This document shows positions 843 through 35,900 of a DNA stretch of 64,000 bases, in pieces. Each line of letters starts with the position of its first letter. Positions within the stretch are counted from its first letter, which is position 1. A program made the position numbers and the translations under genes. The stretch is from positions 1,161,355-1,225,354 of the forward strand of contig NC_134030.1 of assembly GCF_964204645.1 (NCBI RefSeq), in the 5' to 3' direction. Origin of the DNA: Tubulanus polymorphus (taxonomy: Eukaryota > Animalia > Nemertea). Under the pieces are notes generated by a model. The model did not search any database, had not been told where the DNA came from, and saw nothing but the letters and a program-made list of their open reading frames with translations.

Positions 843-914
843 TTCACTGAACCAGAATAAGACTGACTGATATATTTTCAAATGATTTAATATTTTTACT
901 TGTTTTTCTAGATA

Positions 915-3900
915 ATGCCGAAGGCAAATAAAAAAACTCGGGGCGTGGGGCCCTCAACATCTAGCCCCTATAATAAAGTAAGTACAAATTTACTGCTTCC
1001 ATGCTTATTTATTCATCCCATACTTAGTATTTTGTACCCCTGGGTCCAGTTTCACAAAAAGGATTAACGCCTAAATCGATTTAAGATAAACTGTATTAAT
1101 GAAGGAATTAAATCGATTTAAGAGTTAAACCTGTTTGTGAAACTGGGCCCTGAATTGCATCTAGAATGAAAAAAAAGAAAAAAAAATATTGAAAATAACG
1201 TTGGTGAAATATTTCTGGATCTCTCTGGATTTCTGCTCAATGCATCGTTTAGTAAAATATCGATATTCTCTAAAAGTAAAGATATAAGTATAAAAATATT
1301 GTATTGAATCGTGATTAGTTACTGTATGCGCTGCTAGTTGTTGCCCAACCCATAGCCTCATTTCTCTCCATTCTAAATTTGCATTGTTTAACATTGTCTG
1401 GTCGCTATGGAAACTATTTATTTAAGTTTCTTTGTGGTATCCATGGCAACAGTAACGTTTAGGTAGTGGCACCAATTATGGGTCCCAACGTTCCCATGGC
1501 GATACATGAGAACATTTATCCTATTTTTGACCTACATGACGTAAGATGGTAGTGAGTCGATGACGTCATTTTCGTCTCACCACTAATGAAAAAAAAAATT
1601 AAATGAAAAAAAAAGGAAGAAATGGTTAGAATTACGTTTATGAAATTTTTCTGGATCGGCTAAATGTATTGTTCCATTAAATATCGACATTCTCTAAAAT
1701 TATAGGCATCAATATCAAAATGATGATACAGCAGACTCCGCTTAACTCTGTTCTATTTGGACCATTAATTAACCGAATACCAACTTTTTAAAATTTTAGG
1801 ATTTTTACGTTAAGGATCAGAAAATGTGTATGCAATTTCAACCGGGTACCGAGTAGGGTGGCCGAGTCTACTGTAGTCTGCTGCCCCCTCGAATCCATTA
1901 CCTTATTATCTCTCAATTTGCATTGTTTGACCTCGTCTGGTTGCTATGGAAACTATTTAGTTATATCAGGAACGGTTTTTTCGAGGTAACCAGTGGCAAC
2001 AGTTAACAGACGTGTCCGTCCTAGAGATAAACTGTCTGATTTCACAGCCACATCCGTCCTAGAGATAAACTGTTAGATAAACTCTGATTTCGCGTCTGTC
2101 CTATTTCTTGTCATTGTATGAATATGTTTTCTCTTTTATAGGGTACAGCGCAGCAACAACAACAACAACAACAACAACAGCAACAGCAACAACAACAACA
2201 AAAATTTAATATTTCTATGTCCGGAATAGACGTAAGTTATCGTAAACGCCTGTTTGAAGTCATCATTCTTGAGCTTGAAACCGAAATTTATATTATAGAA
2301 TATTAAACCCTGCTTCTGCTACTGACAGGTAATGTCCGTCATACATTACTGCATCGTCAAATCTATACCAGGGTGCACCCAGGCAGATCGTTCGCATCAT
2401 CACATGCAAAGGGCTGATTATTTTGGAACCCAGTTTTTATCAGCTGGAACATTCTGCACATTCGACCATATTGATTGATAGCCCGTTATAGACGAGTGGA
2501 GAAAAACTGAAAAACCAGTTCGGAAAAACTTCGATTGATTTCACTCACATTTACAGAAATTTGGTCCGACCCCAAAACCATTTACTTACACTATACAAAT
2601 CAGATCAGGTTTTTAACATTGTCTTTGATTGTATTTTCAGTTTTTGCCGACAACGCCGCCCAGTGGTGTTTCGACGCCGGTAAGTGATAACTATTTTCTA
2701 ATAAATCACGCTTATTTCAATTTGTAATTTGAAAATAGAGGGTAGTAGCTGTTATGTATAAATTATGCTAATTAGGAATAAATTCATATTCGATTAAGTC
2801 TCATCATCGTAGAAGTCATATATTAATGATGCTATCTCTAAAGTTGTCATTTAAATTAAGTGTTATATTTACTACTTCATTTGCTTCATGACCCAAAAAC
2901 CTCTACTATATAACTACTGGTTTTGTTCTAATCTTGGAGAATTTGCTGCAAAATTTACTTATCATTTGTTAAACAGTTTTTATTGAAAACCTGAATCAGT
3001 GATACATGCATTCATGAATATCCATCTAATATTTTGTTTTATTTTATCTTTACAGGATTTATCACCGATACAGCACGTGGACGTAAGAGATTAAACATTG
3101 ATCTTGAATTTTAAGTTCAAACTAATTTATTTTTTATCTCACTCGGGACTATAGTTATTGCGTTCACTTTGCGTCCAGTTGTCTCGGGTAGTTTTTGATT
3201 TATCGTGTTGATAATTGGTTTATATACTCAAACTCAAAATATCGGCGCAATTGGAATTAAGATGGCGCACTTGTATGTCCATTTTTTTCCCCGGCAAAAT
3301 TAGCACTTTAGCAGATTTTAAGGATCAATTCTGTTGTTATATTACATTGAAATCAGAGTTTAATATATATCGGTATAGAGCAGATTTTTGCTCTAGTTAT
3401 AAATAAAGTTATAAATAATCTCATGACATGTTCTGTATATGTGTAGTGAGTTTCGATGTCTTTGGTTCCTTTTAAACCAGGGGGAGTTAAATTTGAAAAT
3501 GTCAGATCGTCGAGCATTTCAGACCGCTTCCAAAGTGGGTCCCTGCACCCCTAGTTATACCGTTAATATTTTAATAAAACATTAATATTTTTATTTGATA
3601 GAATATATTGATATACCATACATTGATATCGGTCTTGTAATTGGATCAACAACCATGAGATCAAAACACAGCAAATATGAACCTGCTGTGAATCAATAGA
3701 TTTGTGATAAATGTAATGAAATTGTTATTTTTCATATTGACTTTTTGAGTTAAGGGTCTGTTGTATAAGAGTATTTGGTCTCGCGTGTCAATGTATGATA
3801 TCAATCTGTTGTATTTCCTCGTTCCAATGTTTAAAAGGTGTTCGTCACCTTATATTAATAAACTACTTTAACCGTTAGATGGCGCCATAAGTGTGATATT

Positions 3901-6900
3901 TGATTTATGGGATACCCGCAAAACCAGCTATTCCACCAGATGGCGCAACGAGTAGTAGGTCGTTCGTTGTCAAAATTAGTTCATTTTCGATAAACTTTGA
4001 GATGGTTTGAAGAAGAAATACTTTCATTCTTCTACTCTGATATCGATTTAGTTTTCATTAATAATTGATTCATTTAAGAGAACAATTCATTCAGATTTAA
4101 TTGAAATGTACAAGAAAATCGAACGCAGACGACCAACTATTTACTAGCGACACCTGGGGAATCCTCGCCTGCCATAAGTGGAATCCTCGATTGCCACAGT
4201 AAGACTGCGGGTATCCCATTGTTTGGCGTGTGAAGTAAAGTAAAGTTAGAAAACGGATGTTTAACTTTGTTGTGAAACGAAAGCGTTTTGGAGATTTTTA
4301 AACCAATCAAATCAATATTTTGATATTACGCTTGAAACCCTTCCCACTCATATTCTACGTACTAAGTATATATTCTTGTTTCCGTGGAAATCATGGTGAG
4401 TGGCGTCATCTATACAGTGGAGTTAGCTTTAAAAATCGAGCATGCTTCGACAAGTGGCTCCATCTATTCCCTAATACTGAAGCGAGGTAACCAGCAGCGC
4501 CCTTATATACAGGAAATGAACGCCTATCAAGTTTAACAATGCACGGTGTATTGACCACAGCGACCGGTGATAATTATATCAATGTTGATTAGCTATTGCC
4601 ATAGACAGGTCCGTAGCGTTTGACTGGACCAGAACGGGGCCCCCTAACCAAAACAAATTTTGAAAACGTGCCCAGATAAATTGCCTCTGGGAGATTGATT
4701 TAACGAGGTTTTGATTAAATGAACAAATTTTAATATTTGTAAGTTTAACATTTCTGTTTTTAATTTTTCTTTGTAAGGAACTGAATTTTCGAACCCCCCT
4801 TAACCACTTCAAGCTACGTTCCTGATATAGTGCTAGCTATACCTGAATACTTTTCTCTTATTGAAATTGTCTAAAAAACCAGCACCTTGAACTAATGAAC
4901 GTCATAATGAAAATGTTTAAAAATTCAACCGTTAATGAATTTGACTAATATATTTTTTTTATTTTCATTTCTAGCGTCAGTTTGCCTCACAGGCAAGGTC
5001 GCCGTCGCTTAATGTAAGTATCAGTGACGCCCTCAATCTCACATGCCTCACTTCCCTCCTAATGTAACCATTTTTATGAAATTCCTCAAGAAAATATATA
5101 CTAGTAATCTTAGAATACACGTTTTTGTACCCAGACCCCTTCATTCTACTGAACTACCGTGTAATAAGTGCCTGTTGTGTTCATTTTCTGTTGCATTGAT
5201 TTATATATTATTTCTATTTACAGTTGTCAAACAACAGCAGCAGCAGCAGCAGCAGCGCACCCCTCCCGCCGGAGACGCCTCCCGACTTGCAAGCAAGAAG
5301 TAAGTTCAGTCTTCAAATACAATTTCAATGCATTCAATTTTGTGTATGGCATTAAAACGGTTAAAGTTGTGACTAGTTTTCATAACTCCGTGACGTCATA
5401 TTTCCATCGAGTACCGGACCCTTTCCTATGTTTTTTGCCAATTTGGATTGAATGATCGCCAGCGGTTTTTCTATACGACCCGGCTCTGCTGTATTGCATT
5501 TAGCCATCCTTTTTCTTGGCGTTTTTTATAAGAAGGTGTTTGATTTTGTCTCTAAGGGATTTAGGAATTTAAGAGACACTTGTACTCTCTATACAGTGAG
5601 TTTGTTCTGTTTTTGTTCCCTCGTGAATTTTATTTTGTTTGAATCAAATCAAATCAGTGCATCTTTCTTGAATTGCGTGTATGTTATAATATTATGTAAG
5701 TTATAACGTTAAAATTTCTGTTATATTTAAACCGAATATTTAATTGTTGTATTTTGAATGCGATAATGCCGCTCCCTGCTAAAGTCCAGCGTCGTCATCG
5801 TGAGGGATGCGGTCATCTGTTCGGGCCCTGATTACGTTCTGTGTTCATCCTGTTGGGCTACATCGGGCGTTATATGAGTTCATCCTTCCTGGACTTGCGG
5901 ATTGTGGTCGGAAGATCTATGGGTTCGGGCCGATAAGTCCCGGAAACAGAAAGTACAGTTTCTGCCGATGTGCCCATTGATGTCTCTATTTCAGAACATC
6001 ACAGCGGTCGCCGGCTGTACAAGCACGGTCGGCTTCCCAACTCCATTCTCTGAGGAGGATCGCTGGTTCTCTAGTAACGGTCAGTCACCAGTCAATCAAC
6101 GGTTCAGCTGGTTCAGTTTCCCAGGTATCGGCGCGCGACAGTCGGGATACCTGCACAGGAACTCAGGTCCGGTCCGGGCTACTCCGAGCACCGGTCCGGT
6201 CCAGGCATCACCGGATACTGAACATCCTGTCCAGTAGCTTCGAGAACTGGTCCGGTCCAGGCATCACAGGGTACTGAACATCTGGTCTGGTCAGCTTCGA
6301 GAACCGGTCCAGGCATCACCGGATACTGAACATCTGGTCCGGTCAGCTTCGAGAACTGGTCCGGTCCAGGCATCACCGGGTAATAAACATCCGGTCCGGT
6401 CCGGGTGGCTTCGAGCACCGGTCCGGTCCAGGCATCACCGGGTACTGAACATCCAGTCTGGTCCGGTCCAGGCATCACCGGGTACTGAACATCCAGTCTG
6501 GTCCGGTCCAGGCATCACCGGGTACTGAACATCCAGTCCGGTCCGGTCCAGGCATCACCGGATACTGAACATCCGGTCCGGTAGCTTCGACAACTGGTCC
6601 GGTCCAGGCATCACCGGGTACTGAACATCCAGTCCGGTCCGGTCCAGGCATCACCGGGTACTGAACATCCAGTCTGGTCCGGTCCAGGCATCAGTGGATA
6701 CTGAACATCTGGTCCGGTAGCTTCGAGAACTGGTCCGGTCCAGGCATCACTGGGTACTGAACATCCAGTCCGGTCCGGTCCAGGCATCACTGGGTACTGA
6801 ACATCCAGTCCGGTCCAGGCATCACCGGGTACTGAACATCCAGTCTGGTCCGGTCCAGGCATCAGTGGATACTGAACATCCTGTCCGGTCAGCTCCGTGC

Positions 6901-9900
6901 ACCGGTCCGGTCCAGGCATCACTGGGTACTGAACATCCACTCTGGTCCGGTCCAGGCATCACCGGGTACTGAACAGGGTTCGTCGCGGTGCTTGAAAAAC
7001 TTGAAATGGCTTGAATTTGAAAAATACTACTCAAGCGCTTGAAAACAGCTTGAAAATAGATCGAAAGCTTGAAATAATTATTTTTGACTTGAAATAAAAA
7101 GATATGGCTTGAAATGCTTGATTATCACAAATTTTCTTCTTCGCGAATTTTTTTCGATGAAATCGCTGACAGAATATGTTCTTGAGTTGTTTCTACGCTT
7201 GCGTCATGTTTTAGGCATCAATAAAGAAATTAATTGAATTGTATATAATCGCTATGAGGCTCTTGTGGTGAAACTCTACGGTGTCTGGAGACATGAACAT
7301 ACGGGGAAATTTCAGTCATGCATGTTATCGAGCATTGATGTAAAATGGCATTGAAATCCCACACCAGGAGTGAGAGCCATGTTGAAGGCACCGCGACCTA
7401 GTCAAAGTCATTGAACATTACAAATTTCGTATTAGGCCATACAAAAATCAAGGTCTGTTTGCCGTCATCCGACCGACCCGACTTCAAAGGTACCCAGTGG
7501 AAACTTTTTTCTTGGATTCATTGAAATAAATTGTATTTTTGATACAAATGGCCGACCCACTGCCGATGTATGAGCTATGTATGTTTGAAGTTAAGTGTGC
7601 ATCATGTGAAAACATGCCTCGACTATTTAGTTGAAGTTTTCCAGGAAACTGGCAGTGTTCCAATAAGCTGCCATTCATTCTAAAGCTGGTAATGTTATAG
7701 CGTGCATATATTCAATCTACTGTTTCATTTTGAACGCAGATTTCGGATGTTGTTTCCGCTAAAAGTGGTGATGATAAATTTGTTGTTTTTTTTGCCCCAA
7801 AATTTTGCAAAAAAAAAATGATGCTACCTTCCTACTGACTTATCCCAAAAATAGTAGGTGTAACGGCAAAACAGACAATTAATTTGGGATGGCCAAATAT
7901 CCAAATCTTGATTGATATGAATATTTAAGCTAGGAAATGCTGAAAATCATTGTGATGAACAGGTTTCATCTCTAACAGAATCGTATCAACTCGGAGGTTC
8001 CACTGGAATCAAAATTTTACCTCTTTTTTAACATTTTTATACGAACCTGTTCAAAATAGGCAAATTGGCTGCGACTAACGAAAATTGCTTCCAACGTGCC
8101 TTAAAAATAGCTTGAAAATGGTATAAATCTAGCTTGAAATGGCTTGAATTTCACCTGAGCTTGAGACAATGAACCCTGCTGAACATCTGGTCCGGTCAGC
8201 TTCCAGCACCGGTCCGGTCCAGGCATCACCGGTTACTGAACATCCGGTCCGGTCAGCTTCCAGCACCGGTCCGGTCCAGGCATCACCGGTTACTGGTCCG
8301 GTCCGGGCAGCTTTGAGCACCGGTCCGGTCCAGGCATCACTGAGTACTGAACATCCAGTCCGGTCCGGTCAGCTCCGAGCACCGGTCCAGGCATCACCAG
8401 GTACTGAACATCTGGTCTGGTCCGGGCGGCCTGGCATCAATGTTTCGAATTTAAAACATAGTTATCATGGTTCTAGGTTTGGTAGAGGGCGCTCTTCTAC
8501 CAGATGCAGGAGCGAGGTCACCTTCACGGAGATCGAGATCGAGGGATTATGATTGATTCTGTAGGAACCATCATCATTCATCAGTTCAGGTCGAGGGACC
8601 GTTTAGGAAGTTCACGTCTTTCACGTCGAGGGACCGTTTAGGAAGTTCACGTCTTTCACGTCGAGGGACCGTTTAGGAAGTTCACGTCTTTCACGTCGAG
8701 GGACCGTTTAGGAAGTTCACGTCTTTCACGTCGACGGACCGTTTAGGAAGTTCACGTCTTTCACGTCGAGGGACCGTTAAGGAAGTCGTCACAATAATCA
8801 GGATTTCCGCGATTTCGAAAGTCAGATTTTAAACTTGTTATTGTCATTGTAAGCTACCGCAGTTACAGGTAAGCCTATTCTTGATTGCCCGAGACAGGCG
8901 TGCAGATATTGTTCCCGACTTAAGTTTTTGGTTGATTCTCTTGTGACTTGTTTGTTTTAGGGGTGAGATGGATGAGCCTTATTGTTTTTTGACATATATA
9001 GGTCATCCAAGATGGCCGCCACAGCCATTACAATGTGTAAAATAGCCATTTTGAAGCTTGTGACAACTCTACAATCTACAGTTTCAAACCAATTTGCCAA
9101 TTACTTATTCTGTGGTTTCATAATGGTAGGAGAATGAGCCTTATTGTTTTTGACATATATAGGTCATCCAAGATGGCCGCCACAGCCATTTCAATGTGTG
9201 AAATAGCCATTTTGAAGCTTGTGACAACTCTACAATCTACAGTTTCAGACCAATTTACCAATTACTTATTCTGTGGTTTTATAATGGTAAGAGGATGAGC
9301 CTTATTGTTTTTGACATATATAGGTCATCCAAGATGGCCGCCACAGCCATTTCAATGTGTGAAATAGCCATTTTGAAGCTTGTTACCGCTCTACGGACTT
9401 AAGTTTTAAGCTTAAGACTTAAGATGGCCACCACAGTTATATCAATGTGTTAAATCTTATCCGATTTGGAGCTTGTTACTGCTCTAAGATGTAGAGGTTT
9501 AGAGGTTTATAATTTCATTCATACTTGTACTGTGGTTTATTTATGGTGGTCAGAGGATGAGACCTATTACAATTTGCATTCTCTACTTGACTCACTGGTC
9601 AAGGGTTAATATCTAGTTTGATAAATGTGATAAGCATGTCGGTGAATCACCCCCCCCCCCCCCGGACTCTGATCTCAATGTCTGATGTCAATCGTCAGCA
9701 GTTTCAATGGAATGGGCTCGATTAGGTGTGGAACAAGTGGAATCCTCGATTGCCACAGTCGAACCTAGAGTATTAAGAGCTCAATTAGGTTCTTCTTTGC
9801 GTCTCTTCTCCAGTTGGAGTGCTCCAGTTTCCACCGAATGGAGGAAGATTCGAGATGTGCAGATTCAAGTCCACCATGCGGACTCCGGCTCCGGCTCCGG

Positions 9901-12900
9901 CAGCTCAAGGTTCAGCCCGAACTCACACAATGCCATCTCAAGCATCCGTACTTTCTCAAGCGGCTACTAATGCTGTTTGGAGAACAAGTGCACAGCTCCA
10001 ACATTCTCGTGCCCCTTCTGGTCAGAATAATTCTAGTTCATATCGGGGAATGCTCCTAAAAGGAGCTCTTCCTCTCGGAGAAACTCAAAATGAATGCTCG
10101 GGGCCAGTGAGAGGTTGTCTATAACGAGCAGCCACCTACTGATCCGGCGTTCCCGGGTCGTATCACGGCGGCTACTGTCTTCAATTCTGAACACCTCCCG
10201 ACATGCGCCCGAAAGCAGGTCACGAGACACTAATCTCGTTAGCTCTCAAAGATCTGGCCAAAAAGAGAGCAATAGAACCAGTACGGGACGAAGCCACATC
10301 CGGCTGGTTTTCATGAATATTTATGCTCCTGAAGACCACAGGGCGTCGATGGACTGTCATTCCTCGAGTGGCACCTGGATATCCCGAGGCTTCCGATGAC
10401 TAAAACAGGGAGGTAATTCAAGGTCTCCGTCGAGGTTAATGGGCGGCTTCATTGGACCTGAAAGATGTCAGGTTCCTATTCACCCGAAATCTCATCAATT
10501 GCACAGAATGAAGTGGAAACGCTGCCAGTTCCAGTTCAGGTCTCTTCCAGTCGGCCTCAGTACAGCCCACGCCCTGGGTATTTACCAGCTTGGGTCAAGT
10601 CCAGAAGGTACACTACACTCCAGGGCTGGGTTTCATAGATATGGAAGAAAAATAATTCCAGGGAACATTTTGAAATTTGTCAGTTATAACCATGGTTTCT
10701 CATTGTTAGTATGGTGGTTGAGGATTTATCCCTTTGGATAACTTTGATACTCAGTCTATGAAACCGGGTCCTGGAGTATTTGTCTGTTGGTTTACCTCGA
10801 CGACTGGTTACTAGTACCAAACTCGACTATAGAATGTCAGGAGGCGGTGACCGCTGTCGACCGCTGTCGTAGACTTAGTTCACCAGTTCCGCGTAAACTA
10901 AGTAAAATCTCACTTGATGCCGTCCCAACAGTTCACATCTCCGGATCAGCACGGTCTTTCCGTCCATGGCTCGAGTAGCCAAACTTCAAGAAGCGTAGTT
11001 ACCACAAACGAGAGGACAGCTAGTTATCGGTGACGCCTGTGGCTAAATGCAATACCGCACTGCCAGGGGTCGTATCTCTGGCTATCTACACATTCAGAGA
11101 ATATTAACTAAAACCATAGGAAAGGGTCAAGCACTACTCCGAAAAAAACTAATTTTATTTCCAAAAAATTATGATATTATATGGATTGCATGCTGTGTGG
11201 AAGAAGTTTTCAAAATTATTTAGGAGCTTATTATAATTTGAATGCATGAATTGAGAGCAATTTGAAATGTGTTGATATCCGAAAGTGTTTCCATTGACTT
11301 CACTCATTCACCTGATGAAGCTTCTATACATTAGTACCCAAAGCTTGTGTGTCAAATAAACTAGTTACACGTCCTATAAAGTATTACTTGTCTCGTTATA
11401 TATTCTAAACCCCAGTTAACAATTCCAGTAAGTCAGGTTTAGGGAATAGATATTTAAACCTTGAGATGATACCGATGTGATACAATTCCAGTAACTCAGG
11501 TTTAGGGAATAGATATTTAAACCTTGAGATGATACCGATGTGATACAATTCCAGTAAGTCAGGTTTAGGGAATAGATATTTAAACCTTGAGATGAAACCG
11601 ATGTGATACAATCCCAGTAAGTCAGGTTTAGGGAATAGATATTTAAACCTTGAGATGATACCGATGTTATACAATTCCAGTAAGTCAGGTTTAGGGAATA
11701 GATATTTAAACCTTGAGATGAAACCGATGTGATACAATTCCAGTAAGTCAGGTTTAGGGAATAGATATTTAAACCTTCAGATGATACCGATGTGATACAA
11801 TTCCAGTAAGTCAGGTTTAGGGAATAGATATTTAAACCTTGAGATGATACCGATGTAATACAATTCCAGTAAGTCAGGTTTAGGGAATAGATATTTAAAC
11901 CTTCAGATGATACCGATGTTATACAATTCCAGTAAGTCAGGTTTAGGGAATAGATATTTAAACCTTGAGATTAAACCGATGTAATACAATTCCAGTAAGT
12001 CAGGTTTAGGGAATAGATATTTAAACCTTGAGATGAAACCGATGTGATACAATCCCAGTAAGTCAGGTTTAGGGAATAGATATTTAAACCTTGAGATGAA
12101 ACCGATGTGATACAATTCCAGTAAGTCAGGTTTAGGGAATAGATATTTAAACCTTCAGATGATACCGATGTGATACAATTCCAGTAAGTCAGGTTTAGGG
12201 AATAGATATTTAAACCTTCAGATGATACCGATGTGATACAATTCCAGTTAGTCAGGTTTAGGGAATAGATATTTAAACCTTCAGATGAAACCGATGTGAT
12301 ACAATTCCAGTAAGTCAGGTTTAGGGAATAGATATTTAAACCTTCAGATGAAACCGATGTAATACAATTCCAGTAAGTCAGGTTTAGGGAATAGATATTT
12401 AAACCTTGAGATGAAACCGATGTGATACAATTCCAGTAAGTCAGGTTTAGGGAATAGATATTTAAACCTTCAGATGATACCGATGTAATACAATTCCGGT
12501 AAGTCAGGTTTGATATTTAAACCTTGAGATGATACCGATGAATTTAGCAATTTTGAATGAATTAAACCAATATGAGATTTCGATCCTAAGAATATTGGAA
12601 GCTTGTGTTTAACGTTACTAAATATTAATATTATATAAAGCTAGAAGGACACGAGCGTATCCATTTTTCGCCCGATCGCGACGATTAAATTCGCCGGTGA
12701 ATTTATACGCCCGATACGAGCGGGTACCGATCTATCTATAAATCGGCCGTCACGGTGATTTCGTCGCCCGCCGACATTAAACATGTTCGATATTTACGCC
12801 GGTGTTCGGGTCACTTGTTAATTCGCTCGGCTTGTCGGCAAGCTTAAAAAGATTTAGAAAAAACTAGAAATTCTCATTCCTGAATGAACTGGATTCATCT

Positions 12901-16600: not shown

Positions 16601-16652
16601 GTGCCTTGAACGCATGAGTCGTTCATGCGCGCCTAATATGCCTTCACTGAAA
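16581..16652 (+). other. 24-bp-arm hairpin overlapping the gene A stop codon (also ~46699-46770)
   Basis: tttcagtgaagggatattaggtgc ... gcgcctaatatgccttcactgaaa; inner cgcatga/tcatgcg pair. Confidence 0.75.
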
Positions 16653-22540: not shown

Positions 22541-22734
22541 TTCGCAATAACCGCAATAAAACGATAATCTGGAGTTGTAATAGTGTTGTGTATTTGCGTA
22601 GTGGATCAAGTGGAAGGATTTTAAGTGTATTTGGTGACTTTAATTCGTTCGCATCCAACAGAATCAACAAAGACATTACAAAAAACGACAAAAAATGATT
22701 GAATGTAAATGCATTGAATTTAGGTTTGATGATC

Positions 22735-24406: not shown

Positions 24407-24472
24407 TTTTTGATACGGGCTAGAAGTTGAGGGGCCCGCGCCCCGGGTTTTCTTTAAAGCTTTTGGCATTAT
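24407..24472 (-). pseudogene. Third variant of gene A exon 1, truncated at the duplication breakpoint
   Basis: Reverse complement reads ctag|ataATG... MPKALKKTRGAGPSTSSPYQK; the upstream 70 bp match copies 1/2 except for a 1-nt indel; no GT donor. Confidence 0.85.
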
Positions 24473-24542
24473 CTAGAAAAACAAGTAAAAATTATTAAAT
24501 CATTTGAAAATATATCAGTCAGTCTTATTCTGGTTCAGTGAA

Positions 24543-25105
24543 CTAATTCTCTATATGGTGCATTTAGGGGTCCAGGGACACCACATCCACTAATTCTCTA
24601 TATGGTGCATGTAGGGGTCCAGGAACACCACATCCACTAATTCTCTATACGATGCATGTAGGGGTCCAGGGACACCACATCCACTAATTCTCTATATGGT
24701 GCATGTAGGGGTCCAGGGACACCACATCCACTAATTCTCTATACGATGCATGTAGGGGTCCAGGGACACCACATCCACTAATTCTCTATATGGTGCATGT
24801 AGGGGTCCAGGGACACCACATCCACTAATTCTCTATATGGTGCATGTAGGGGTCCAGGGACACCACATCCACTAATTCTCTATATGGTGCATGTAGGGGT
24901 CCAGGAACACCACATCCACTAATTCTCTATATGGTGCATGTAGGGGTCCAGGGACACCACATCCACTAATTCTCTATATGGTGCATGTAGGGGTCCAGGG
25001 ACACCACATCCACTAATTCTCTATATGGTGCATGTAGGGGTCCAGGGACACCACATCCACTAATTCTCTATATGGTGCATGTAGGGGTCCAGGGACACCA
25101 CATCC
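24543..25105 (-). repeat. 47-bp satellite, inverted orientation (~12 units)
   Basis: Reverse complement of the unit at 1-842 and 31581-32864. Confidence 0.97.
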
Positions 25106-25548
25106 TCTATTCTGTTTGGGGCATGGAGATTGCCCAGATTGCCTCTGCTAACAACAGACACCCATTCAACATTTCTCTTTATGGTACTTTCTTCTTCCTC
25201 TTTTCTCTCATTTTACAAATTGATATTCAACTATGACCTTTTTCATTTTGATATGATGTTTATCTTTACATCATGGTTGCTGGAGATTGTACAAGGAATG
25301 ACACAAGAAATAATATCCTTAGTTTTAAACTCACAGCTGTTTGCAATTCTTTCATTTAATCACAGGTTCGATTGAAACGATGCATTCCTATACATATACG
25401 CAATCATATCTTTTTTCGAGTCATCATTCTCAGGGAAATTTGATCTCCACTCAGGTACAGTCTACTGGCTTGCCAGTTATCCTTTAACTTTTTTACAAAA
25501 TTATCTTTTCAAAATGAATTACCATGAAAGCAGTAAATTTGAACTTAC

Positions 25549-25826
25549 CTTATCATAAGGGGTTTTTCTTTTACTCTTTGTTTTAGCTTTAGCTATCTTT
25601 GATTTGCTGGTGGTTTTAACATGCATGTCGAGGGAGCTCTATCAATCAAGGAACAGTCGGCTCACAAGCAGCCCCTGCCCAAAAGGTTTTGACATTATAT
25701 TTTCAAAAGCTCTAGTTGTTCTGTAGAACCGAGAGCGGAGCTCTGACTTGTTCCCCTCACTGCTGAGGTCTACTTTCTCTGATTCGCTGATTGGCTTCTC
25801 TTTGGTACATTTTAGATGATCAAAAA
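25549..25826 (-). pseudogene. Divergent exon-1-related exon ending ...MHVKTTSKSKIAKAKTKSKRKTPYDK|GTAAGT
   Basis: PYDK followed by gtaagttcaaatttactgctttcatg is homologous to gene A PYNK|gtaagtacaaatttactgcttccatg. The frame extends to an AG at 25827 with two adjacent stops (TGA TAG) shortly before the ATG at 25626. Confidence 0.6.
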
Positions 25827-25899
25827 CTAGAAACTGTCATGCGTTTATTCATTTGGGTATATGTTAAAATTCTTTTACAGTAATGGCATATTAGGCACA

Positions 25900-26246
25900 T
25901 CAAAACAAATCCGGAATTGTCCCCGAACGAAGTGGCTCCCTCCACTCTCCATCAGTATGCCGGGCCACCACCTCTACCTCTCGGGCAACTCGATCACTCG
26001 CCAGCTTTTTGGCGAGTGAACGAGTGACCGCCCGAGATACGGATGGAGGAGCAGGAGGAGCAGGACCCGCACCATCTCCAGCCCCACCACCATCCCTCTT
26101 CGGCCTCTTCCTATTTATCCCCTCCCCTTCCTCCCGATTACCTTCGTCAGCCGCACCATCCGCCGGGACCACTCTTGCTCCTCCTCCCTGCAGAGCCACG
26201 ACGACCGCAACTGGTACTTTTCGGTTTCTCATGGTTTCCCCACCAT
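25900..26246 (-). pseudogene. Third variant of gene A terminal exon with a different 5' end
   Basis: ORF 25900-26253 shares VAVVVA...RHTDG...LRSGTIPDL with exon 9, with a different N-terminal part and an earlier stop; candidate acceptor ttctcttttgaaag. Confidence 0.85.
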
Positions 26247-29200
26247 CTTTCAAAAGAGAACTATCAATATATCATTAGCTACAAGGAAATTTTTCAGAAA
26301 CTTTTTCAGGTCATTCTTTCTTGTATTATTAGCATTTGATTCTCTATATATCGTCAGAACATGGACTCAGAGTGTTTCTTTAATGGTTAAGAATGTCTCT
26401 TTAACCAACATCCCCCTAGCCTGCTTCCTACATATCCCTTCCCTTTCCTCCTGATTACCTTTGATCCCCACTGCCTAGCAGCTAACAGCTGCTGCTATTT
26501 TATCTGGTTTACATGTTTTGCAGATAGTGTCTGTTATGCTATAGTTGTTCTTTTAATCGTTTAACTTCTTCATCTGAAATTTCATTATTCTAATTTCAGT
26601 TTCACGCAGGAAATGGTTCATGAAAATCTGCATTGAGACTGGGACGAAATGTGCATTGAGACGGATGAAATCTGCATGAACAGAGATATACTTTAAGATC
26701 CCCATTTTATCCATCGGAGTGAATGTACATCCACTACTCACAGGTAGCAAACCTACAAACGCTAAACACTCATCCCTGGGCCCTGATTCAAAAATAAAAA
26801 TAAAAGATTAAATTAAGAATTAACATTTTTATGAATCAGTGATCAGTTTCATAAAATAATTCCTAAATTAATTTTAGGGGTTTATTATTTCATATTGAAA
26901 TGAATTCTTCATGTTTATGCAATTCTCATTATCTTTCATTGCAGCATTTATATATTCAATTTTAATCATACATGTGAAATATATAATGTATTTTCAGGGA
27001 AACGTAAACAAGAAAGGAAGGGAAGAAAGAGAAGGGAAGAAAGAGAAGGGAAGAAAGAGTTGGATGATTAATGCGCACTTATTCTCCATTCCGAATTCCT
27101 GTACTCGACTCTAGGTGATCATCATACGAACGAGATATAGAAAAAAAAAACATTACTGAAGTCATCTCTATTTTGAAGTCTCAATTAGTATTCAGTTTAC
27201 TTCAGATAACGTAATTTGGTTTAATCACAAGTCGTCAACATTATAATCAATGTAACTACAGTGACTACATTATTGTCCTTTTATTGAGAAATTTATGTTA
27301 AATTTTGATTTCTGGGATAAATCAAAATTCAAATGTTATCATTTTTTGTATCAAAAATTGTAAAAAATTGAATAACTTGTGTGCTATTGAAACATTCAGT
27401 TATGGGGAGTTTTTTGCTCAGAAAACTTTGAGCCTGTTTATACAAGTGTTGTAACAAGTGTTGAACAATTCAAAGATCATGTTTTTTATACTTTGCCATG
27501 TTAGAAAAAATGTTTTCTAATATATTGATGTTTCTAAAAAAACATATGATTCAACTTCAAACGGCCAACAAGCCTTCTAATAAAACTAGTTTGTCATATA
27601 TATATATATATATTACTTGGTCATTGTCAAGTTTTTTTAAAAATATTTTGGTTTTCTCAGCTTTCTCTGGTGGAAATTTCTTCGTGGAATTCCTCTTCTA
27701 TACAAGTTCCTCCTCAGACTGTTTTAATGCGAGAGTTTTTAACAACCGGATCCTCAGAAAATGGTCGGAGTGCCAAGTCTTCGATTTAAGATCACCAGTC
27801 TTATCTGAGACCATAAGTTCACTAGCGAATCCAACAGCTATAGGATGGAACAGTATTATTATATAGGTCACCACTGTGCAATTGAGCCCAGATCATCAGA
27901 AAAAGATAAAAGTGAAGATATGTGATGGGATTCATTGAAAATTTTGCATATATAATTAATTCATTGAAATACTTAATTTGTATGACTTATTTTTTGGGAA
28001 TTTTCGAATTTGTCATCAATAACTAGTATATATTTCTTTTCAAGTTGTGAGCGATCTAGTTCTCTGTCGACCCATTGAAAATGAATCGACTCTGAACTGT
28101 AGAACTGGACCCAGGGAGCTGAATCTCGCGTGCCACAGCAAGATACAGAGCTCTTCAATGTCTTAACCGTCAGGTGCTGCCCCTAAACAAATCAATAGCG
28201 GTAAATCTGTGAACTAACTTATAGCTCGCTTGCCAGAGTAGAATCATAGCGAGCTGTCTAAAATCTTGAACCGTCTAGTGCTGCCCCTTAATCGATATGT
28301 ATCGGAAAAGTGAATTTATTACTCGCATGCCACAGTAGTTGAGTAGTTGGAACATCACGATAGACTCGTTTTTCTGTGCAGCTATAACGGGAACTATTTC
28401 AGATCTGATAATGAATATAAACTCAGTCACAGTTCGATAACAAACGCCGCTGGGTGAAATTGATGTAAACAAATAATCGTGTTGAAATTGAATTTAGTTT
28501 AAGATATATTTTCGTGGTAGTTTTTATTTTCAAGCTGTTTACGTTCACTTCAAATGATGAAACGATGAAACCATATTAAATACATCCCTGTTTTAGTGGG
28601 GATTTTGAGTTTTGGTCCTTTCCGTATCTTCTAGAAACATCAAGTAGAAAGGCATTAACTGAACCCTATGTCTTTAACTTCAGGAGTCTATATGGAGTTT
28701 TCGGATGCCTCTTTTCCTCACTTCTTGCATTCGTCACTATTAGAAATCCGGACAAACTGAATTCAGTTCGACGAGGCCGAAGAACAGAAGACCAAAGAGT
28801 GATCTGCACTAGCCGCAGGGTTCGTGTTGGCTTGGATCGGTGGGAGGCAATCAAACCCCGACACGTGAAGATGTATCCTCAAAAATGGATACCGGAACGC
28901 TTCTCTGGTTTACGATGATTAGTCTGCAGGGATAACTCTTTGGCGGGGCGTGATCGCGTGAATAGCCCAAACTAAACCTTCAGAGTTCACTGTACTACAG
29001 CATACAACATCTGATAACTTGCATAATAAAGCGCGGCGTGCATGAAAAGAATTGTATAAATGCGGGCAAGATTCCGTGCCCTGGCAATCGAACGCCGGAG
29101 TGGAGGTATTCCATACACTGGTAGGTGAGTCGGAGTAGACTGGTTGCTTGTCCCATAGAGACCGGTAACCAGTCTAGCCACCTCACGATCAGTCTACATT

Positions 29201-29639: not shown

Positions 29640-29803
29640 CCACTTTCTTCCGGTCCACTTACTTCCGCGTTTGTGATTTGCATACAAGTAGTTTGAATGT
29701 TAAATGTATTAAGCCGCGTGTTGATTGGTTGAGGTCAGTGCGGTTTACTGAACGATGACCAGCTGTCAGCTGATCGAATCATTCGTTTCACAGACATTAC
29801 GAC
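29640..29803 (+). promoter_or_regulatory. Candidate promoter and short non-coding first exon for gene A copy 2
   Basis: ETS-like cttccgg, octamer atttgcat, CHR-like tttgaa, inverted CCAAT, Inr-like tcattc (~29780), then a donor ac|gtaagt at 29804. Exon 1 of gene A is preceded by an acceptor AG and therefore needs an upstream exon. Confidence 0.4.
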
Positions 29804-30424
29804 GTAAGTATATTTTACATCTTTGATCAAAAATTGTAGTGTAAAAAAACTCAAAACTAAGGCCTCTATAAATGATCGATTGACTTTAAATTATTACTTT
29901 AGCACAGCTCTTGTAGACAATGATTAGGTGTCATAGTAGTTTAGCTCGAAAGTGCACATATAAGGTTAATTTTCATCCCTTATTTAGAGACCGAGGTATT
30001 GAGCGTCCATTTCAGCCCTTAAAACATCATCAACCTACCTCAAACTGACTGTTTTTAAATCCAACAATAGCTACCTAACTATTGACTCATCATGGATTCG
30101 ATTCAAAAACAATTTTTGATGATCATAGTGATTCGAAACGTTTGAATTTTTGAAAAACACGAATGCTAAACGACGGATCCGGACTTCGATTGCGGCCCAA
30201 TGGCAGAGTTGATTTTCTTATTTGGAATTTGAAGATATAAATCACTGAAATCAATTGGTTTTCTCAACCAAAATTAAAATTAAGAAGAATTTAGGATGGA
30301 GATGTTTGATTTTCATTTTGTCTAAAATGCCGACTTAAAAATTAATTCAATTGAATCAAATTAATGAATTCATCATTTCACGATATTATAGATAATCAAA
30401 ATGTGAATATGAAATCACCTTTTC

Positions 30425-31530: not shown

Positions 31531-31580
31531 TTTTGTCAATCATCATATCAAGATTTGCAATCCCAGTTGCCTTCAAGTTT

Positions 31581-32864
31581 CATATAGAGAATTAGTGGAT
31601 GTGGTGTCCCTGGACCCCTACATGCACCATATAGAGAATTAGTGGATGTGGTGTCCCTGGACCCCTACATGCACCATATAGAGAATTAGTGGATGTGGTG
31701 TCCCTGGACCCCTACATGCACCATATAGAGAATTAGTGGATGTGGTGTCCCTGGACCCCTACATGCACCATATAGAGAATTAGTGGATGTGGTGTCCCTG
31801 GACCCCTACATGCACCATATAGAGAATTAGTGGATGTGGTGTCCCTGGACCCCTACATGCACCATATAGAGAATTAGTGGATGTGGTGTCCCTGGACCCC
31901 TACATGTACCATATAGAGAATTAGTGGATGTGGTGTCCCTGGACCCCTACATGCACCATATAGAGAATTAGTGGATGTGGTGTCCCTGGACCCCTACATG
32001 CACCATATAGAGAATTAGTGGATGTGGTGTCCCTGGACCCCTACATGCATCATATAGAGAATTAGTGGATGTGGTGTCCCTGGACCCCTACATGCATCAT
32101 ATAGAGAATTAGTGGATGTGGTGTCCCTGGACCCCTACATGCATCATATAGAGAATTAGTGGATGTGGTGTCCCTGGACCCCTACATGCATCATATAGAG
32201 AATTAGTGGATGTGGTGTCCCTGGACCCCTACATGCACCATATAGAGAATTAGTGGATGTGGTGTCCCTGGACCCCTACATGCATCATATAGAGAATTAG
32301 TGGATGTGGTGTCCCTGGACCCCTACATGCACCATATAGAGAATTAGTGGATGTGGTGTCCCTGGACCCCTACATGCACCATATAGAGAATTAGTGGATG
32401 TGGTGTCCCTGGACCCCTACATGCACCATATAGAGAATTAGTGGATGTGGTGTCCCTGGACCCCTACATGCACCATATAGAGAATTAGTGGATGTGGTGT
32501 CCCTGGACCCCTACATGCACCATATAGAGAATTAGTGGATGTGGTGTCCCTGGACCCCTACATGTACCATATAGAGAATTAGTGGATGTGGTGTCCCTGG
32601 ACCCCTACATGCACCATATAGAGAATTAGTGGATGTGGTGTCCCTGGACCCCTACATGCACCATATAGAGAATAAGTGGATGTGGTGTCCCTGGACCCCT
32701 ACATGCACCATATAGAGAATTAGTGGATGTGGTGTCCCTGGACCCTTACATGCACCATATAAAGAATTAGTGGATGTGGTGTCCCTGGACCCCTACATGC
32801 ACCATATAGAGAATTAGTGGATGTGGTGTCCCTGGACCCCTACATGCACCATATAAAGAATTAG
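31581..32864 (+). repeat. 47-bp satellite (~27 units)
   Basis: Same unit as 1-842. Confidence 0.97.
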
Positions 32865-32936
32865 TTCACTGAACCAGAATAAGACTGACTGATATATTTT
32901 CAAATGATTTAATATTTTTACTTGTTTTTCTAGAAG

Positions 32937-35900
32937 ATGCCAAAAGCAACAAAAAAAACACGGGGCGTGGGCCCCTCACATTCAAGCCCGTATAATAAAG
33001 TAAGTACAAATTTACTGCTTCCATGCTTATTTATTCATCCCATACTTAGTATTTTGTACCCCTGGGTCCAGTTTCACAAAAAGGATTAACGCCTAAATCG
33101 ATTTAAGATAAACTGAATTAATGAAGAAATTAAATCGATTTAAGAGTTAAACCTGTTTGTGAAACTAGGCCCTGAATTGCATCTAGAATGAAAAAAAAGA
33201 AAAAAAAATATTGAAAATAACGTTGGTGAAATATTTCTGGATCTTTCTGGATTTCTGCTCAATGCATCGTTTAGTAAAATATCGATATTCTCTAAAAGTA
33301 AAGATATAAGAATAAAAATATTGTATTGAATCGTGATTAGTTACTGTATGCGCTGCTAGTTGTTGCCCAACCCATAGCCTCATTTCTCTCCATTCTAAAT
33401 TTGCATTGTTTAACATTGTCTGGTCGCTATGGAAACTATTTATTTAAGTTTCTTTGTGGTATCCATGGCAACAGTAACGTTTAGGTAGTGGCACCAATTA
33501 TGGGTCCCAACGTTCCCATGGCGATACATGAGAACATTTATCCTATTTTTGACCTTCATGACGTAAGATGGTAGTGAGTCGATGACGTCATTTTCGTCTC
33601 ACCACTAATGAAAAAAAAAATGAAATGAAAAAAAAGGAAAAAATCGTTAGAATTACGTTTATGAAATTTTTCTGGATCGGCTAAATGTATTGTTCCATTA
33701 AATATCGACATTCTCTAAAATTATAGGCATCAATATCAAAATGATGATACAGCAGACTCCGCTTAACTCTGTTCTATTTGGACCATTAATTAACCGAATA
33801 CCAACTTTTTAAAATTTTAGGATTTTAACTTCAAGGATCAGAAAATGTGTATGCAATATCAACCGGGTACCGAGTAGGGTGGCCGAGTCTACTGTAGTCT
33901 GCTGCCCCCTCGAATCCATTACCTTATTATCTCTCAATTTGCATTGTTTGACCTCATCTGGTTGCTATGGAAACTATTTAGTTATATCAGGAACGGTTTT
34001 TTCGAGGTAACCAGTGGCAACAGTTAACAGACGTGTCCATCCTAGAGATAAACTGTCTGATTTCACAGCCACATCCGTCCTGGAGATAAACTGTTAGATA
34101 AACTCTGATTTCGCGTCTGTCCTATTTCTTGTCATTGTATGAATATGTTTTCTCTTTTATAGGGTACAGCGCAGCAACAACAACAACAACAACAACAACA
34201 ACAGCAACAGCAACAACAACAACAAAGATTTAATATTTCTATGTCAGGAATAGACGTAAGTTATCGTAAACGCCTGTTTGAAGTCATCATTCTTGAGCTT
34301 GAAACCGAAATTTATATTATAGAATATTAAACCCTGCTTCTGCTACTGACAGGTAATGTCCGTCATACATTACTGCATCGTCAAATCTATACCAGGGTGC
34401 ACCCAGGCAGATCGTTCGCATCATCACATGCAAAGGGCTGATTATTTTGGAACCCAGTTTTTATCAGCTGGAACATTCTGCACATTCGACCATATTGATT
34501 GATAGCCCGTTATAGACGAGTGGAGAAAAACTGAAAAACCAGTTCGGAAAAACTTCGATTGATTTCACTCACATTTACAGAAATTTGGTCCGACCCCAAA
34601 ACCATTCACTTACACTATACAAATCAGATCAGGTTTTTAACATTGTCTTTGATTGTATTTTCAGTTTTTACCCACAACGCCGCCCAGTGGTGTTTCGACG
34701 CCGGTAAGTGATAACTATTTTCTAATAAATCACGCTTATTTCAATTTGTAATTTGAAAATAGAGGGTAGTAGCTGTTATGTATAAATTATGCTAATTAGG
34801 AATAAATTCAAATTCGATTAAGTCTCATCATCGTAGAAGTCATATATTAATGATGCTATCTCTAAAGTTGTCATTTAAATTAAGTGTTATATTTACTACT
34901 TCATTTGCTTCATGACCCAAAAACCTCTACTATATAACTACTGGTTTTGTTCTAATCTTGGAGAATTTGCTGCAAAATTTACTTATCATTTGTTAAACAG
35001 TTTTTATTGAAAACCTGAATCAGTGATACATGCATTCATGAATATCCATCTAATATTTTGTTTTATTTTATCTTTACAGGATTTATCACCGATACAGCAC
35101 GTGGACGTAAGAGATTAAACATTGATCTTGAATTTTAAGTTCAAACTAATTTATTTTTTATCTCACTCGGGACTATAGTTATTGCGTTCACTTTGCGTCC
35201 AGTTGTCTCGGGTAGTTTTTGATTTATCGTGTTGATAATTGGTTTATATACTCAAACTCAAAATATCGGCGCAATTGGAATTAAGATGGCGCACTTGTAT
35301 GTCCATTTTTTTCCCTGGCAAAATTAGCACTTTAGCAGATTTTAAGGATCAATTCTGTTGTTATATTACATTGAAATCAGAGTTTAATATATATCGGTAT
35401 AGAGCAGATTTTTGCTCTAGTTATAAATAAAGTTATAAATAATCTCATGACATGTTCTGTATATGTGTAGTGAGTTTCAATGTCTTTGGTTCCTTTTAAA
35501 CCAGGGGGGAGTTAAATTTGAAAATGTCAGATCGTCGAGCATTTCAGACCGCATCCAAAGTGGGTCCCTGCACCCCTAGTTATACCGTTAATATTTTAAT
35601 AATACATTAATATTTTTATTTGATAGAATATATTGATATACCATACATTGATATCGGTCTTGTAATTGGATCAACAACCATGAGATCAAAACACAGCAAA
35701 TATGAACCTGCTGTGAATCAATAGATTTGTGATAAATGTAATGAAATTGTTATTTTTCATATTGACTTTTTGAGTTAAGGGTCTGTTGTATAAGAGTCTT
35801 TGGTCTCGCGTGTCAATGTATGATATCAATCTGTTGTATTTCCTCGTTCCAATGTTTAAAAGGTGTTCGTCACCTTATATTAATAAACTACTTTAACCGT

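Follow-up and report, generated by a model that had tools for sequence, protein, structure and literature searches.

We analysed a 64,000-nt stretch of the genome of the nemertean Tubulanus polymorphus (hereafter, the window), which carries two copies of a multi-exon gene and several antisense fragments. The gene product, an NLS- and polyQ-bearing orphan of about 349 amino acids, looks nuclear from its sequence. In copy 1, read on the forward strand, a 47-bp satellite (1-843) lies directly 5' of the gene and is followed by a unique upstream flank (844-911), near-invariant across copies, in which a polypyrimidine tract leads to an AG acceptor at the end. Exon 1 (912-977) is a hypervariable cassette with a 3-nt leader and 21 codons, MPKANKKTRGVGPSTSSPYNK, and intron 1 (978-2141) contains a hairpin with a 45-bp stem (1042-1150). 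The exons that follow, also on the forward strand, are exon 2 (2142-2231), which encodes the polyQ and varies at its 5' and 3' ends; exons 3 (2641-2679) and 4 (4975-5013), both variable all along; exon 5 (5995-6124), whose donor site is less certain than in the other exons; exon 7 (12996-13061), in which both ends of ~20 nt are variable and the 24 nt in the middle are invariant; and exon 8 (14844-15073), variable in its first ~35 nt and otherwise uniform. The last exon (16208-16600) encodes the NLS-rich C-terminal 130 amino acids and shows intron-like uniformity, with a hairpin spanning its stop codon (16581-16652).

Copy 2 has the same satellite array at its 5' side (31581-32865), with exon 1 at 32934-32999 (forward strand) and the remaining exons at 34163-34255, 34665-34703, 37000-37038, 38020-38149, 44618-44683, 44962-45191 and 46326-46718. 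The satellite is also present in inverted orientation (24542-25128), next to an antisense exon-1 pseudo-cassette (24407-24472, reverse strand) that retains an intact upstream flank (24473-24541). This pseudo-cassette has no intron 1 and runs directly into AGAAC..., which resembles the start of exon 2. An inverted repeat of 723 nt, with 95.6% identity, links the antisense scrap with the 5' end of copy 2. Older material lies on the reverse strand nearby: a fragment that takes in the 3' end of exon 1 together with the first part of intron 1 (25513-25561; 84% identical), and an antisense fragment of an older last-exon lineage (25865-26227; 90% nucleotide identity, reading frame intact), a further piece of which lies at 26404-26461.

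A sequence-only reading of this locus had reported that the coding part of exon 1 is recoded among the three copies while its flanks are almost identical, and our recount gave the same figures. Copies 1 (915-977) and 2 (32937-32999) differ at 11 of 63 sites, amounting to six synonymous codons plus N5T and T15H; the inverted copy (24407-24469, reverse strand) differs from copy 1 at 14 of 63 sites and from copy 2 at 11 of 63. The three exonic bases 5' of the ATG add two differences, giving 13/66 between copies 1 and 2 over the whole exon (912-977). By contrast, the 70 nt upstream are identical in copies 1 and 2, with one 1-nt indel in the inverted copy; the 116 nt downstream are identical, in line with the ~115 bp claimed; and a comparison of intron 1 in copies 1 and 2 shows 16 differences over 1163 aligned bases (1.38%, close to the earlier estimate of ~1.5%). 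Against the background between the two ~22-kb units (409 mismatches in 21,522 aligned columns, or 1.9%), the exon-1 excess is highly significant (Poisson P = 1e-9; Fisher P = 3e-10). The variable block begins at the first base past the AG acceptor (ttgtttttctAG, then ATAATG) and ends at AAA, followed by GTAAGT. Because an AG acceptor and a GT donor bound it, we take the block to be a splice-bounded exon and rejected the idea that it marks a transcript start.

The gene belongs to a tandem family of some 30 units, each of 32 kb, spread over three contigs (C3, C6 and C8), and we compared 28 genomic copies from these contigs. The excess of exon over flank divergence held across all of them: exon 1 had a diversity of 0.158, with 26 of 66 sites variable and 13 sites carrying at least three alleles, whereas the flanks had a diversity of 0.019, with at least three alleles at 4 of 1375 sites. 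The only flank windows as diverse as exon 1 were those on exon 2. Flank divergence was 0.7-1.1% within arrays and 1.3-2.8% between contigs, alongside exon-1 divergence of 12-26%. A 29-nt stretch of the upstream flank occurred without mismatch in 45 genomic copies, of which about 20 were antisense cassettes. The 28 copies comprised 21 distinct exon-1 sequences, all in frame and with conserved peptides; the variable sites were distributed 5:5:14 over the three codon positions, and codon 5 encoded at least seven different residues across copies. No diversity was left at the AG and GT splice signals on either side of exon 1. Measured by distance from exons, diversity was 0 within 6 nt, 0-0.003 within 10 nt, 0.003-0.016 up to 50 nt (0.009-0.016 between 10 and 50 nt) and about 0.03 beyond; exon-adjacent intron sequence is thus less diverse than the intron background, and the profile by distance showed a step and no gradual decay of linked diversity away from exons.

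The behaviour of exon 1 was shared by exons 2, 3, 4 and 7 and, at their 5' ends, by exons 5 and 8. Silent-site difference was 0.29-0.51 in exons 1, 2, 3 and 7; the last exon had a value of 0.022, and introns stood at about 0.03 (0.01 within a cluster), so that silent sites of the small exons were 10-25 times as diverse as the adjoining introns. In the same four exons, pN/pS was 0.08-0.25, and we found no protein-altering switching, in which non-synonymous changes would equal or exceed synonymous ones. Only exon 4 (0.82) and, at low divergence, exon 8 (1.0) had values near 1. Exon 5 had moderate diversity (0.064), with variable sites over its full length, and exon 4 of one copy (C3:1312958) was radically different. 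Every island of divergence contained amino-acid polymorphism, with pN/pS below 1, whereas the last exon (393 nt) and the greater part of exon 8 were as uniform as introns (pS 0.02), with neither amino-acid polymorphism nor silent diversity. Switches between the arginine codons AGA and CGT and between the serine codons AGT and TCA indicate deep divergence under protein constraint. All introns were kept in the 12 genes examined (12/12), and cluster-specific intron indels were preserved. The sequence-only reading had proposed a process acting on mRNA while keeping the peptide. In its favour, the excess is bounded by exons to within a few bases and the peptide is largely kept; the effect does not extend over the whole mRNA, however, as the 3' part, as uniform as introns, makes plain.

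The histories of exon 1 and its flanks were only loosely coupled (Mantel r 0.40). Pairs of copies with just 2-5 differences in about 1230 nt of flank differed at 7-13 exon-1 sites, and pairs with identical exon 1 differed in their flanks by up to 1.4%; one pair (L001 and L002) was identical across 1.3 kb. Between near-identical units, differences lay in contiguous sub-blocks: all seven exon-1 differences between L007 and L009, for example, fell within the first 36 nt. All four gametes were present in 102 of 210 site pairs. No donor for the exon-1 variant of copy 1 was found within three mismatches in the whole assembly. The coding segments and the DNA around them thus differ in history. Exon diversity in this family is confined to exons, mostly silent, multi-allelic and mosaic, and it is common to the genes and to the ~70 pseudo-cassettes.

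Genome-wide, about 70 antisense exon-1 pseudo-cassettes lie between gene units, with about 69 exon-1 copies in reverse orientation and 35 in forward orientation. These pseudo-cassettes, which adjoin gene copies, have conserved arms and variable cores. Every scrap seen was antisense to the neighbouring genes, including in the inverted region C6:0.65-0.69 Mb, and at C3:654.1-654.8 kb cassettes form a run with a 174-nt period. The cassette type at 24407-24472 recurs antisense in at least 12 units, and gene C6:1252022 carries its 5' 32 nt; several further gene haplotypes have identical antisense counterparts. For at least 10 of the 28 genes, an antisense cassette provides a perfect match of 32-35 nt. 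Between distinct exon-1 types, the median length of uninterrupted identity is only 13 nt. In at least nine antisense copies, exon 1 is joined precisely and in frame to exon 2 without intron 1. This fusion was seen only in antisense pseudo-cassettes, and the fused exon type was not found elsewhere in the assembly. In L029, the sole fused copy compared, the fused exon shares 74-78% of its bases with modern exons, whereas the flanks match modern copies at 28/28 nt upstream and 310/311 nt (99.7%) of intron 2. Intron-less copies, possibly derived from RNA, are thus part of the system; the alternative to intron loss is a later gain of intron 1 by the lineage of the genes.

The family also has older members. 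Last-exon fragments on C8 are 85-93% identical and have non-homologous introns, antisense last-exon fragments are only 87-91% identical, with mostly silent changes, and relatives with 45% identity occur on C9 and C11. To judge from these sequences, the family is much older than its non-coding uniformity suggests; given such old, diverged lineages, the uniformity reflects homogenisation and not youth.

Our preferred explanation, which we put forward tentatively, is that old coding cassettes are shuffled in short patches within non-coding DNA kept uniform by concerted evolution. Unequal exchange and gene conversion would keep the non-coding DNA of about 30 units near-identical, while short DNA conversion patches, with the identical flanks as homology arms, would shuffle cassette segments among genes and pseudo-cassettes. 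Densely mismatched coding cores may not be erased by homogenising tracts, owing to a putative mismatch barrier to heteroduplex formation that selection on a small number of variable residues (codons 5, 6, 11 and 15, for example) may have initiated or strengthened. As cores escape these tracts, silent differences would keep piling up in them, whereas single changes in the flanks would be swept away, and conserved splice signals would mark the ends of the cores. This DNA-level account explains as much as, or more than, a process acting on mRNA. It has difficulties of its own: the step in diversity is steeper than linked selection predicts and needs the putative barrier; it does not account for the initial rise of core density to a level that resists homogenisation; variable patches abut exon edges, which tracts entering from introns should homogenise first; and a spliced template is the simpler account of the exon 1-exon 2 fusion in modern flanks.

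It is unlikely, in our judgement, that the templates were spliced RNA, cDNA or intron-less copies of diverged paralogues, with only the exons overwritten. Homology would then stop at exon junctions, and the arrays could be young. Variable blocks do end exactly on splice sites, without spilling into introns; variable patches flank exon junctions on both sides, as where the end of exon 7 meets the start of exon 8; and precise exon 1-exon 2 junctions exist in genomic DNA, in L029 within modern flanks. Conversion by cDNA or RNA from older paralogues had been suggested from the window, and the older lineages with non-homologous introns (on C8) and the intron-less fusions that it calls for do exist, but in the assembly the copy 1 variant lacks a donor, as does the fused type outside the scraps. 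Reverse transcription would also favour 3' exons, whereas the 5' exons are affected here; the last exon and most of exon 8 lack imported patches, although the older lineages differ by 7-15%; and no introns were lost from the genes examined. Moreover, identical flanks hide ordinary DNA tracts, so the exchange can be explained without RNA. An RNA-level arms race, in which antisense cassettes between the units yield small RNAs that target the spliced mRNA and each gene copy is under positive selection for silent changes disrupting the complementarity, seems decidedly improbable. The antisense bias, the inverted repeat between the window's scrap and copy 2, and the short identity shared by exon-1 types are consistent with it, as is the nature of the family, an amplified orphan nuclear-protein gene; exon 1, moreover, has the most antisense copies, some of them perfect, and is the most variable, while the last exon is uniform. 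The bias could nevertheless come from one ancestral inversion amplified with the unit, and close relatives differ in blocks and not by scattered new point changes. Escape from antisense targeting, as the sequence-only reading had proposed, is not evident, since the genes perfectly matched by antisense cassettes have not escaped. No documented animal case in which silent recoding served as an escape is known to us.

Taken more broadly, a process that recognises mature RNA, and not ordinary DNA conversion, whether by repair templated on spliced or intron-less molecules or by selection against complementarity to small RNAs from the antisense cassettes, may have recoded the small exons of a possibly selfish family, a proposal that we regard as possible but doubtful. 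The antisense cassette arrays would then document the contest and at the same time be the genes' opponent in it, with silent recoding as the means of escape. A mutation rate raised in exons alone by methylation-, transcription- or editing-linked mutagenesis would fit the large silent excess in small exons and the many variable third positions in NCG-prone Pro, Thr, Ala and Ser codons, yet the unaffected last exon and most of exon 8 largely refute it and make it very remote. All four bases occur at several sites, the transition:transversion ratio is the same in the exon (6:7) as in the flanks (48:49), and pairs with identical exon 1 reach 1.4% flank divergence, so there is no proportionality of rates. 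Long near-identical arrays are prone to assembler and polisher error, and the identity of L001 and L002 might be so read, but we give hardly any credence to an artefact as the source of the exon differences or of apparent intron uniformity. The exon-1 sequences are distinct, in frame and biased towards third-position changes, with conserved peptides, the pattern is repeated in eight exons and three contigs, cluster-specific intron indels survive, and no known artefact silently recodes exons.

Classic cases of divergence islands involve the introns of primate red and green opsin genes and, in the MHC, introns as against exons. Theory describes how such islands persist under gene conversion between duplicates (PMC3924837), and the GOT1 paralogues of Tigriopus provide an example (PMC3728101). 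Like these, the present family has homogenised non-coding DNA, short and deeply diverged coding segments, mosaic haplotypes and decoupled exon and intron histories; intron diversity and pS differ in the manner expected of islands, and the four-gamete pattern, the blocks and the 32 nt shared with a scrap type attest to mosaicism. Unlike them, it comprises about 30 genes and about 70 pseudo-cassettes; almost all of its small exons form islands, silent changes make up most of the differences (pN/pS 0.1-0.25), and diversity steps at splice sites instead of decaying with distance. In snake toxin genes, accelerated segment switch in exons (ASSET), or accelerated exon evolution, involves switching only in exons, by a mechanism that its authors call unknown (PMC2474615, PMC2711939). 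Here, too, short exon segments are switched among copies with highly similar introns; there, however, the result is radical protein change in secreted toxins, whereas this orphan, nuclear-looking protein largely keeps its peptide and most changes are silent.

Further parallels exist in silent-cassette conversion systems, such as the chicken Ig pseudo-V genes and Borrelia vlsE, where non-expressed cassettes with conserved arms and variable cores likewise adjoin mosaic genes, often in opposite orientation. Those systems are programmed, somatic or clonal, and protein-changing, whereas the changes here are mostly silent and on a germline evolutionary scale. In Drosophila, amplified driver genes are paired with antisense or hairpin suppressors (Stellate/Su(Ste) and Dox/Nmy), which would be the nearest analogues of an RNA-level arms race. 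The likeness lies in gene content and layout: a lineage-restricted gene that encodes a basic nuclear protein has been amplified in tandem, and antisense or inverted pieces of it are interspersed among the copies; exon-restricted silent recoding has, to our knowledge, not been reported for either pair. Intron loss mediated by reverse transcriptase is a known process, and the fused cassettes resemble its products in that intron 1 is precisely absent, exons 1 and 2 are joined in frame and genomic flanks are kept. They differ in being confined to antisense pseudo-cassettes and in lacking the 5'-most intron, where loss of a 3' intron is expected.

Silent sites are usually taken as the neutral standard, and introns should diverge no more slowly, a pattern that is reversed across these roughly 30 genes and 70 pseudo-cassettes. 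If only conversion and a mismatch barrier are at work, the family would be an exceptionally clean natural system for measuring tract lengths, homology thresholds and the persistence of islands. Should the cause instead recognise spliced RNA, whether in templated repair or in evading small RNAs, gene-family evolution would have a new route, and the family offers many independent replicates for testing such recognition. For the dating of duplicates in this genome, dS and intron identity disagree more than tenfold.

Exon 1 of the two gene copies in the window (912-977 in copy 1 and 32934-32999 in copy 2, both on the forward strand) was compared with the inverted copy, an antisense exon-1 pseudo-cassette between the gene units (24407-24472, reverse strand). 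The three pairs differed at 11, 14 and 11 of 63 coding positions, reproducing every count of the sequence-only reading, as did the six synonymous codons plus N5T and T15H that separate copy 1 from copy 2. The surroundings also matched its description: upstream, a single indel in the inverted copy is the only difference over 70 nt; the 116 nt downstream are identical, and intron 1 differs by 1.38%. With the 3-nt leader included, copies 1 and 2 differ at 13 of 66 nt, where 1.25 differences would be expected (Poisson P = 1e-9), and the variable block extends from the first base past the AG acceptor to AAA|GTAAGT. No other copy lies within 3 mismatches of copy 1's exon-1 variant anywhere in the assembly.

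A whole-genome search recovered approximately 28 full copies, plus partial ones, on contigs C6 (0.67 and 1.06-1.74 Mb), C3 (0.40-1.31 Mb) and C8. Among 28 aligned copies, which are related by duplication so that counts over them are not independent events, exon 1 occurs as 21 distinct sequences, with a diversity of 0.158, 26 of 66 sites variable and at least three alleles at 13 sites. Flank diversity was 0.019 (1375 sites), and the only intervals near the exon-1 level fall on exon 2. The variable coding sites of exon 1 are distributed 5:5:14 over the three codon positions, and the peptide reads MPKAxKKTRGxGPSxSSPYNK, with at least seven residues encoded at codon 5.

The exon-over-intron excess first noted for exon 1 proved to extend to other small exons when twelve full-length copies were aligned. 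We placed the exons of copy 1 by combining splice signals with the reading frame and with comparison across the family, using inferred splice sites, and counted substitutions only, many gap-inclusive hot spots being indels. Diversity, pS and pN/pS were 0.164, 0.35 and 0.25 for exon 1 (912-977); 0.115, 0.51 and 0.08 for exon 2 (2142-2231); 0.115, 0.30 and 0.13 for exon 3 (2641-2679); 0.125, 0.14 and 0.82 for exon 4 (4975-5013); 0.064, 0.11 and 0.46 for exon 5 (5995-6124); 0.108, 0.29 and 0.16 for exon 7 (12996-13061); 0.028, 0.027 and 1.01 for exon 8 (14844-15073); and 0.008, 0.022 and 0.11 for exon 9, the last exon (16208-16600), with a diversity of 0.029 in non-exonic DNA. Within a single cluster, exon 1 reached 0.13-0.15 versus approximately 0.01 for non-exonic DNA. 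Intron diversity was 0 within 6 nt of an exon, 0.003 at 7-10 nt, 0.009-0.016 at 10-50 nt and approximately 0.03 further away; the change at the splice site is therefore a step, and exon-adjoining intron is less diverse than distant intron. Codon-family switches (Arg AGA/CGT and Leu TTG/CTG) lie beside identical introns. Not every exon is variable throughout: in exon 7 an invariant 24 nt separates two variable ends of 20 nt each, exon 8 varies in its first 35 nt only, and the last exon is uniform.

Within clusters, dense non-exonic patches correspond to alignment edges at large intron-7 indels or to small two-allele SNP clusters. The one genuine deep non-exonic patch, at 8890-8960, marks only the split between the C3 and C6 clusters: 65 nt are approximately 50% different between all C3 and all C6 copies, in otherwise identical surroundings. 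It is flanked by GTAAGC and TTTTAG and may represent a tiny intron or the edge of an exon that escaped recognition. One array gene (L009, G000:C6:1384345) carries a 1-nt exon-1 deletion that shifts the frame, and an outlying copy (G000:C3:1312958) has a radically different exon 4 (GHIGRLAPSPSLN), with most of exon 5 absent from the alignment.

Exon and flank histories were only moderately correlated (Mantel r 0.40 between exon-1 and flank distances). Between contigs, flanks differ by 1.3-2.8% and exon 1 by 12-26%. Pairs with 2-5 flank differences per approximately 1230 nt differ at 7-13 exon-1 sites, and pairs identical in exon 1 show flank divergence of up to 1.4%. Near-identical units differ in blocks, with 7 out of 7 differences between loci L007 and L009 falling in the first 36 nt, and all four gametes were present in 102 out of 210 exon-1 site pairs. 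Together, the block differences, the four gametes and the decoupled distances suggest that the exon changes largely by short-patch exchange in a pool of variants, rather than by a clock-like excess of point changes.

Last-exon identity was 98-100% in the arrays, 92-93% for outlying copies, 85-93% for the C8 paralogues, whose intron homology ends 100-230 nt in, and 87-91% for antisense fragments. The window's own antisense last-exon fragment (25865-26227) retains an open frame, and its differences are mostly silent. Given these old last-exon lineages, the uniform non-coding DNA of the arrays reflects homogenisation or recent re-amplification rather than how old the family is. At G000:C8:15158588-15172302, six copies of a tandem repeat (period 2.69 kb) each hold the last exon's first 91 codons, 88-91% identical; they form a compact array of their own, from an older lineage.

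A 35-place degenerate pattern for the 5' half of exon 1 matched 104 copies in the genome, 35 forward and 69 reverse. Every non-gene exon-1 copy is antisense to the neighbouring genes, including those in the inverted region C6:0.65-0.69 Mb. These pseudo-cassettes comprise many in-frame exon-1 types, some identical to present genes. The type in the window's inverted copy (GCTTTAAAG, 24407-24472) is present in at least 12 units and has its first 32 nt in common with a single gene, at C6:1252022. In 45 copies the 29-nt flank upstream shows no mismatch, and one older cassette type differs at 3 places in the flank versus 8 in 35 exon bases. Exon 4 with its flanks, and exons 4-5, also have antisense copies.

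Three pseudo-cassette loci were read through in full. In the L029 cassette, exon 1 is fused in frame to exon 2, without intron 1. Relative to copy 1, it is 74% identical in exon 1 and 78% identical at the end of exon 2, and the fused exon carries a Ser AGT/TCA switch and a 1-nt frameshift. Its flanks match modern ones, at 100% over the upstream 28 nt and 99.7% over the 311 nt with which intron 2 begins. Fused copies of this kind number nine on C6 and C3, all antisense, and belong to at least two diverged types. The window's inverted copy continues past exon 1 into AGAAC..., which looks like the beginning of a fused exon-2 type. Antisense cassettes also form mini-arrays (G000:C3:654109-654760 and C6:1036204-1036868) with periods of approximately 130-240 nt (174 nt on C3), in which neighbours have identical flanks and different exon cores. 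Tandem pseudo-cassette junctions coincide with the short repeat AAATCGATTTAA/AAATGATTTAA.

We tentatively read these patterns as old coding cassettes lying inside homogenised DNA, an account that is plausible but far from assured. Dense mismatches in the cores would halt homogenising tracts, the cores having perhaps been seeded by selection on a few residues, and short patches would shuffle variants among genes and pseudo-cassettes. The account agrees with an old family, with decoupled exon and flank histories, with mosaic haplotypes and with C-terminal exons that are uniform; it does not explain how the cores arose or why the step is so sharp. Exact exon boundaries are what templating by spliced RNA or intron-less copies would yield, and such templating would also account for a fused exon in modern flanks. 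However, it lacks donors, it should have hit the last exon too, and the effect lies at the 5' end, not the 3' end, so that we consider it rather unlikely. Escape from putative small RNAs of the antisense arrays agrees with the bias in orientation and with exon 1 ranking above the last exon, but a perfect cassette match persists for many genes, and we regard this explanation as improbable.

Several other candidates were set aside. Whole-exon mutagenesis does not agree with the uniform large exons and the absence of rate proportionality, and CpG-only decay does not agree with the presence of all four bases at several sites. With tracts of ordinary length, hitchhiking near selected residues cannot produce a fifty-fold drop within approximately 25 nt. 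We judge an assembly or polishing artefact very unlikely, since the 21 variants are in frame with a third-position bias and the pattern recurs in eight exons and on three contigs. A single old block taking in exons 7 and 8 with intron 7 between them was rejected, as 400 nt of identity lie between the diverged intron interior and exon 8.

Silent-cassette conversion systems and driver/suppressor loci both resemble the antisense cassette arrays in layout. Divergence islands under gene conversion offer the closest accepted framework (PMC3924837, PMC3728101). Opsins and MHC are classic cases of this kind. The closest phenomenology is ASSET in snake toxin genes, in which segments switch in exons only, introns remain similar and the mechanism is unknown (PMC2474615). 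ASSET switches alter the protein, whereas the changes in the present exon family are mostly silent.

The window holds two tandem units (1-24400 and 32023-54480; repeat of approximately 32 kb) with one gene each, differing at 409 of 21,522 aligned bases (1.9%), and satellites are abundant. AG and GT border every exon, and the summed coding sequence predicts approximately 349 aa, with a polyQ tract, S/T-P-rich stretches and a KKTRTKRKRK motif. We found no counterpart of exon 6 in the earlier numbering, and the reading frame passes directly from exon 5 into exon 7. Protein searches, made exon by exon, gave no Pfam family above threshold for exons 5, 8 or 9 and no relative of the 130-aa last-exon peptide among 1.84 billion representative proteins. 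Thus, the gene is, on these searches, a probable orphan.

The gene units hold further features. A hairpin with a near-perfect 45-bp stem lies 65 nt into intron 1 (1042-1150, also 33064-33172; -51 kcal/mol, z = -10); its arms hold AAATCGATTTAA, similar to the upstream AAATGATTTAA, and the hairpin may represent either a MITE or a precursor of hairpin RNA. Satellites after exon 5 (6125-6975 and 8179-8422; periods of 40 and 57 nt) consist on the gene strand of GPVQASPVTEHPVRS repeats, partly in frame with exon 5, and vary in copy number between units. Three overlapping ORFs of approximately 100 aa with a reverse-transcriptase-like F.F..LP.GL motif (9819-10741 and 42189-43111) look like a decayed retroelement within the long intron between exons 5 and 7. 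Intron 7 measures 1782 nt in copy 1 (13062-14843) versus 278 nt in copy 2 (44684-44961), and C3 carries a third version, which has other insertions; the versions are 5-20% different in the interior and identical over the exon-adjoining 75-400 nt. Finally, a hairpin over the last-exon stop codon (16581-16652; -45.9 kcal/mol, z = -9.9), visible in all copies as an opposite-strand self-match, may have a role in 3'-end processing or regulation.
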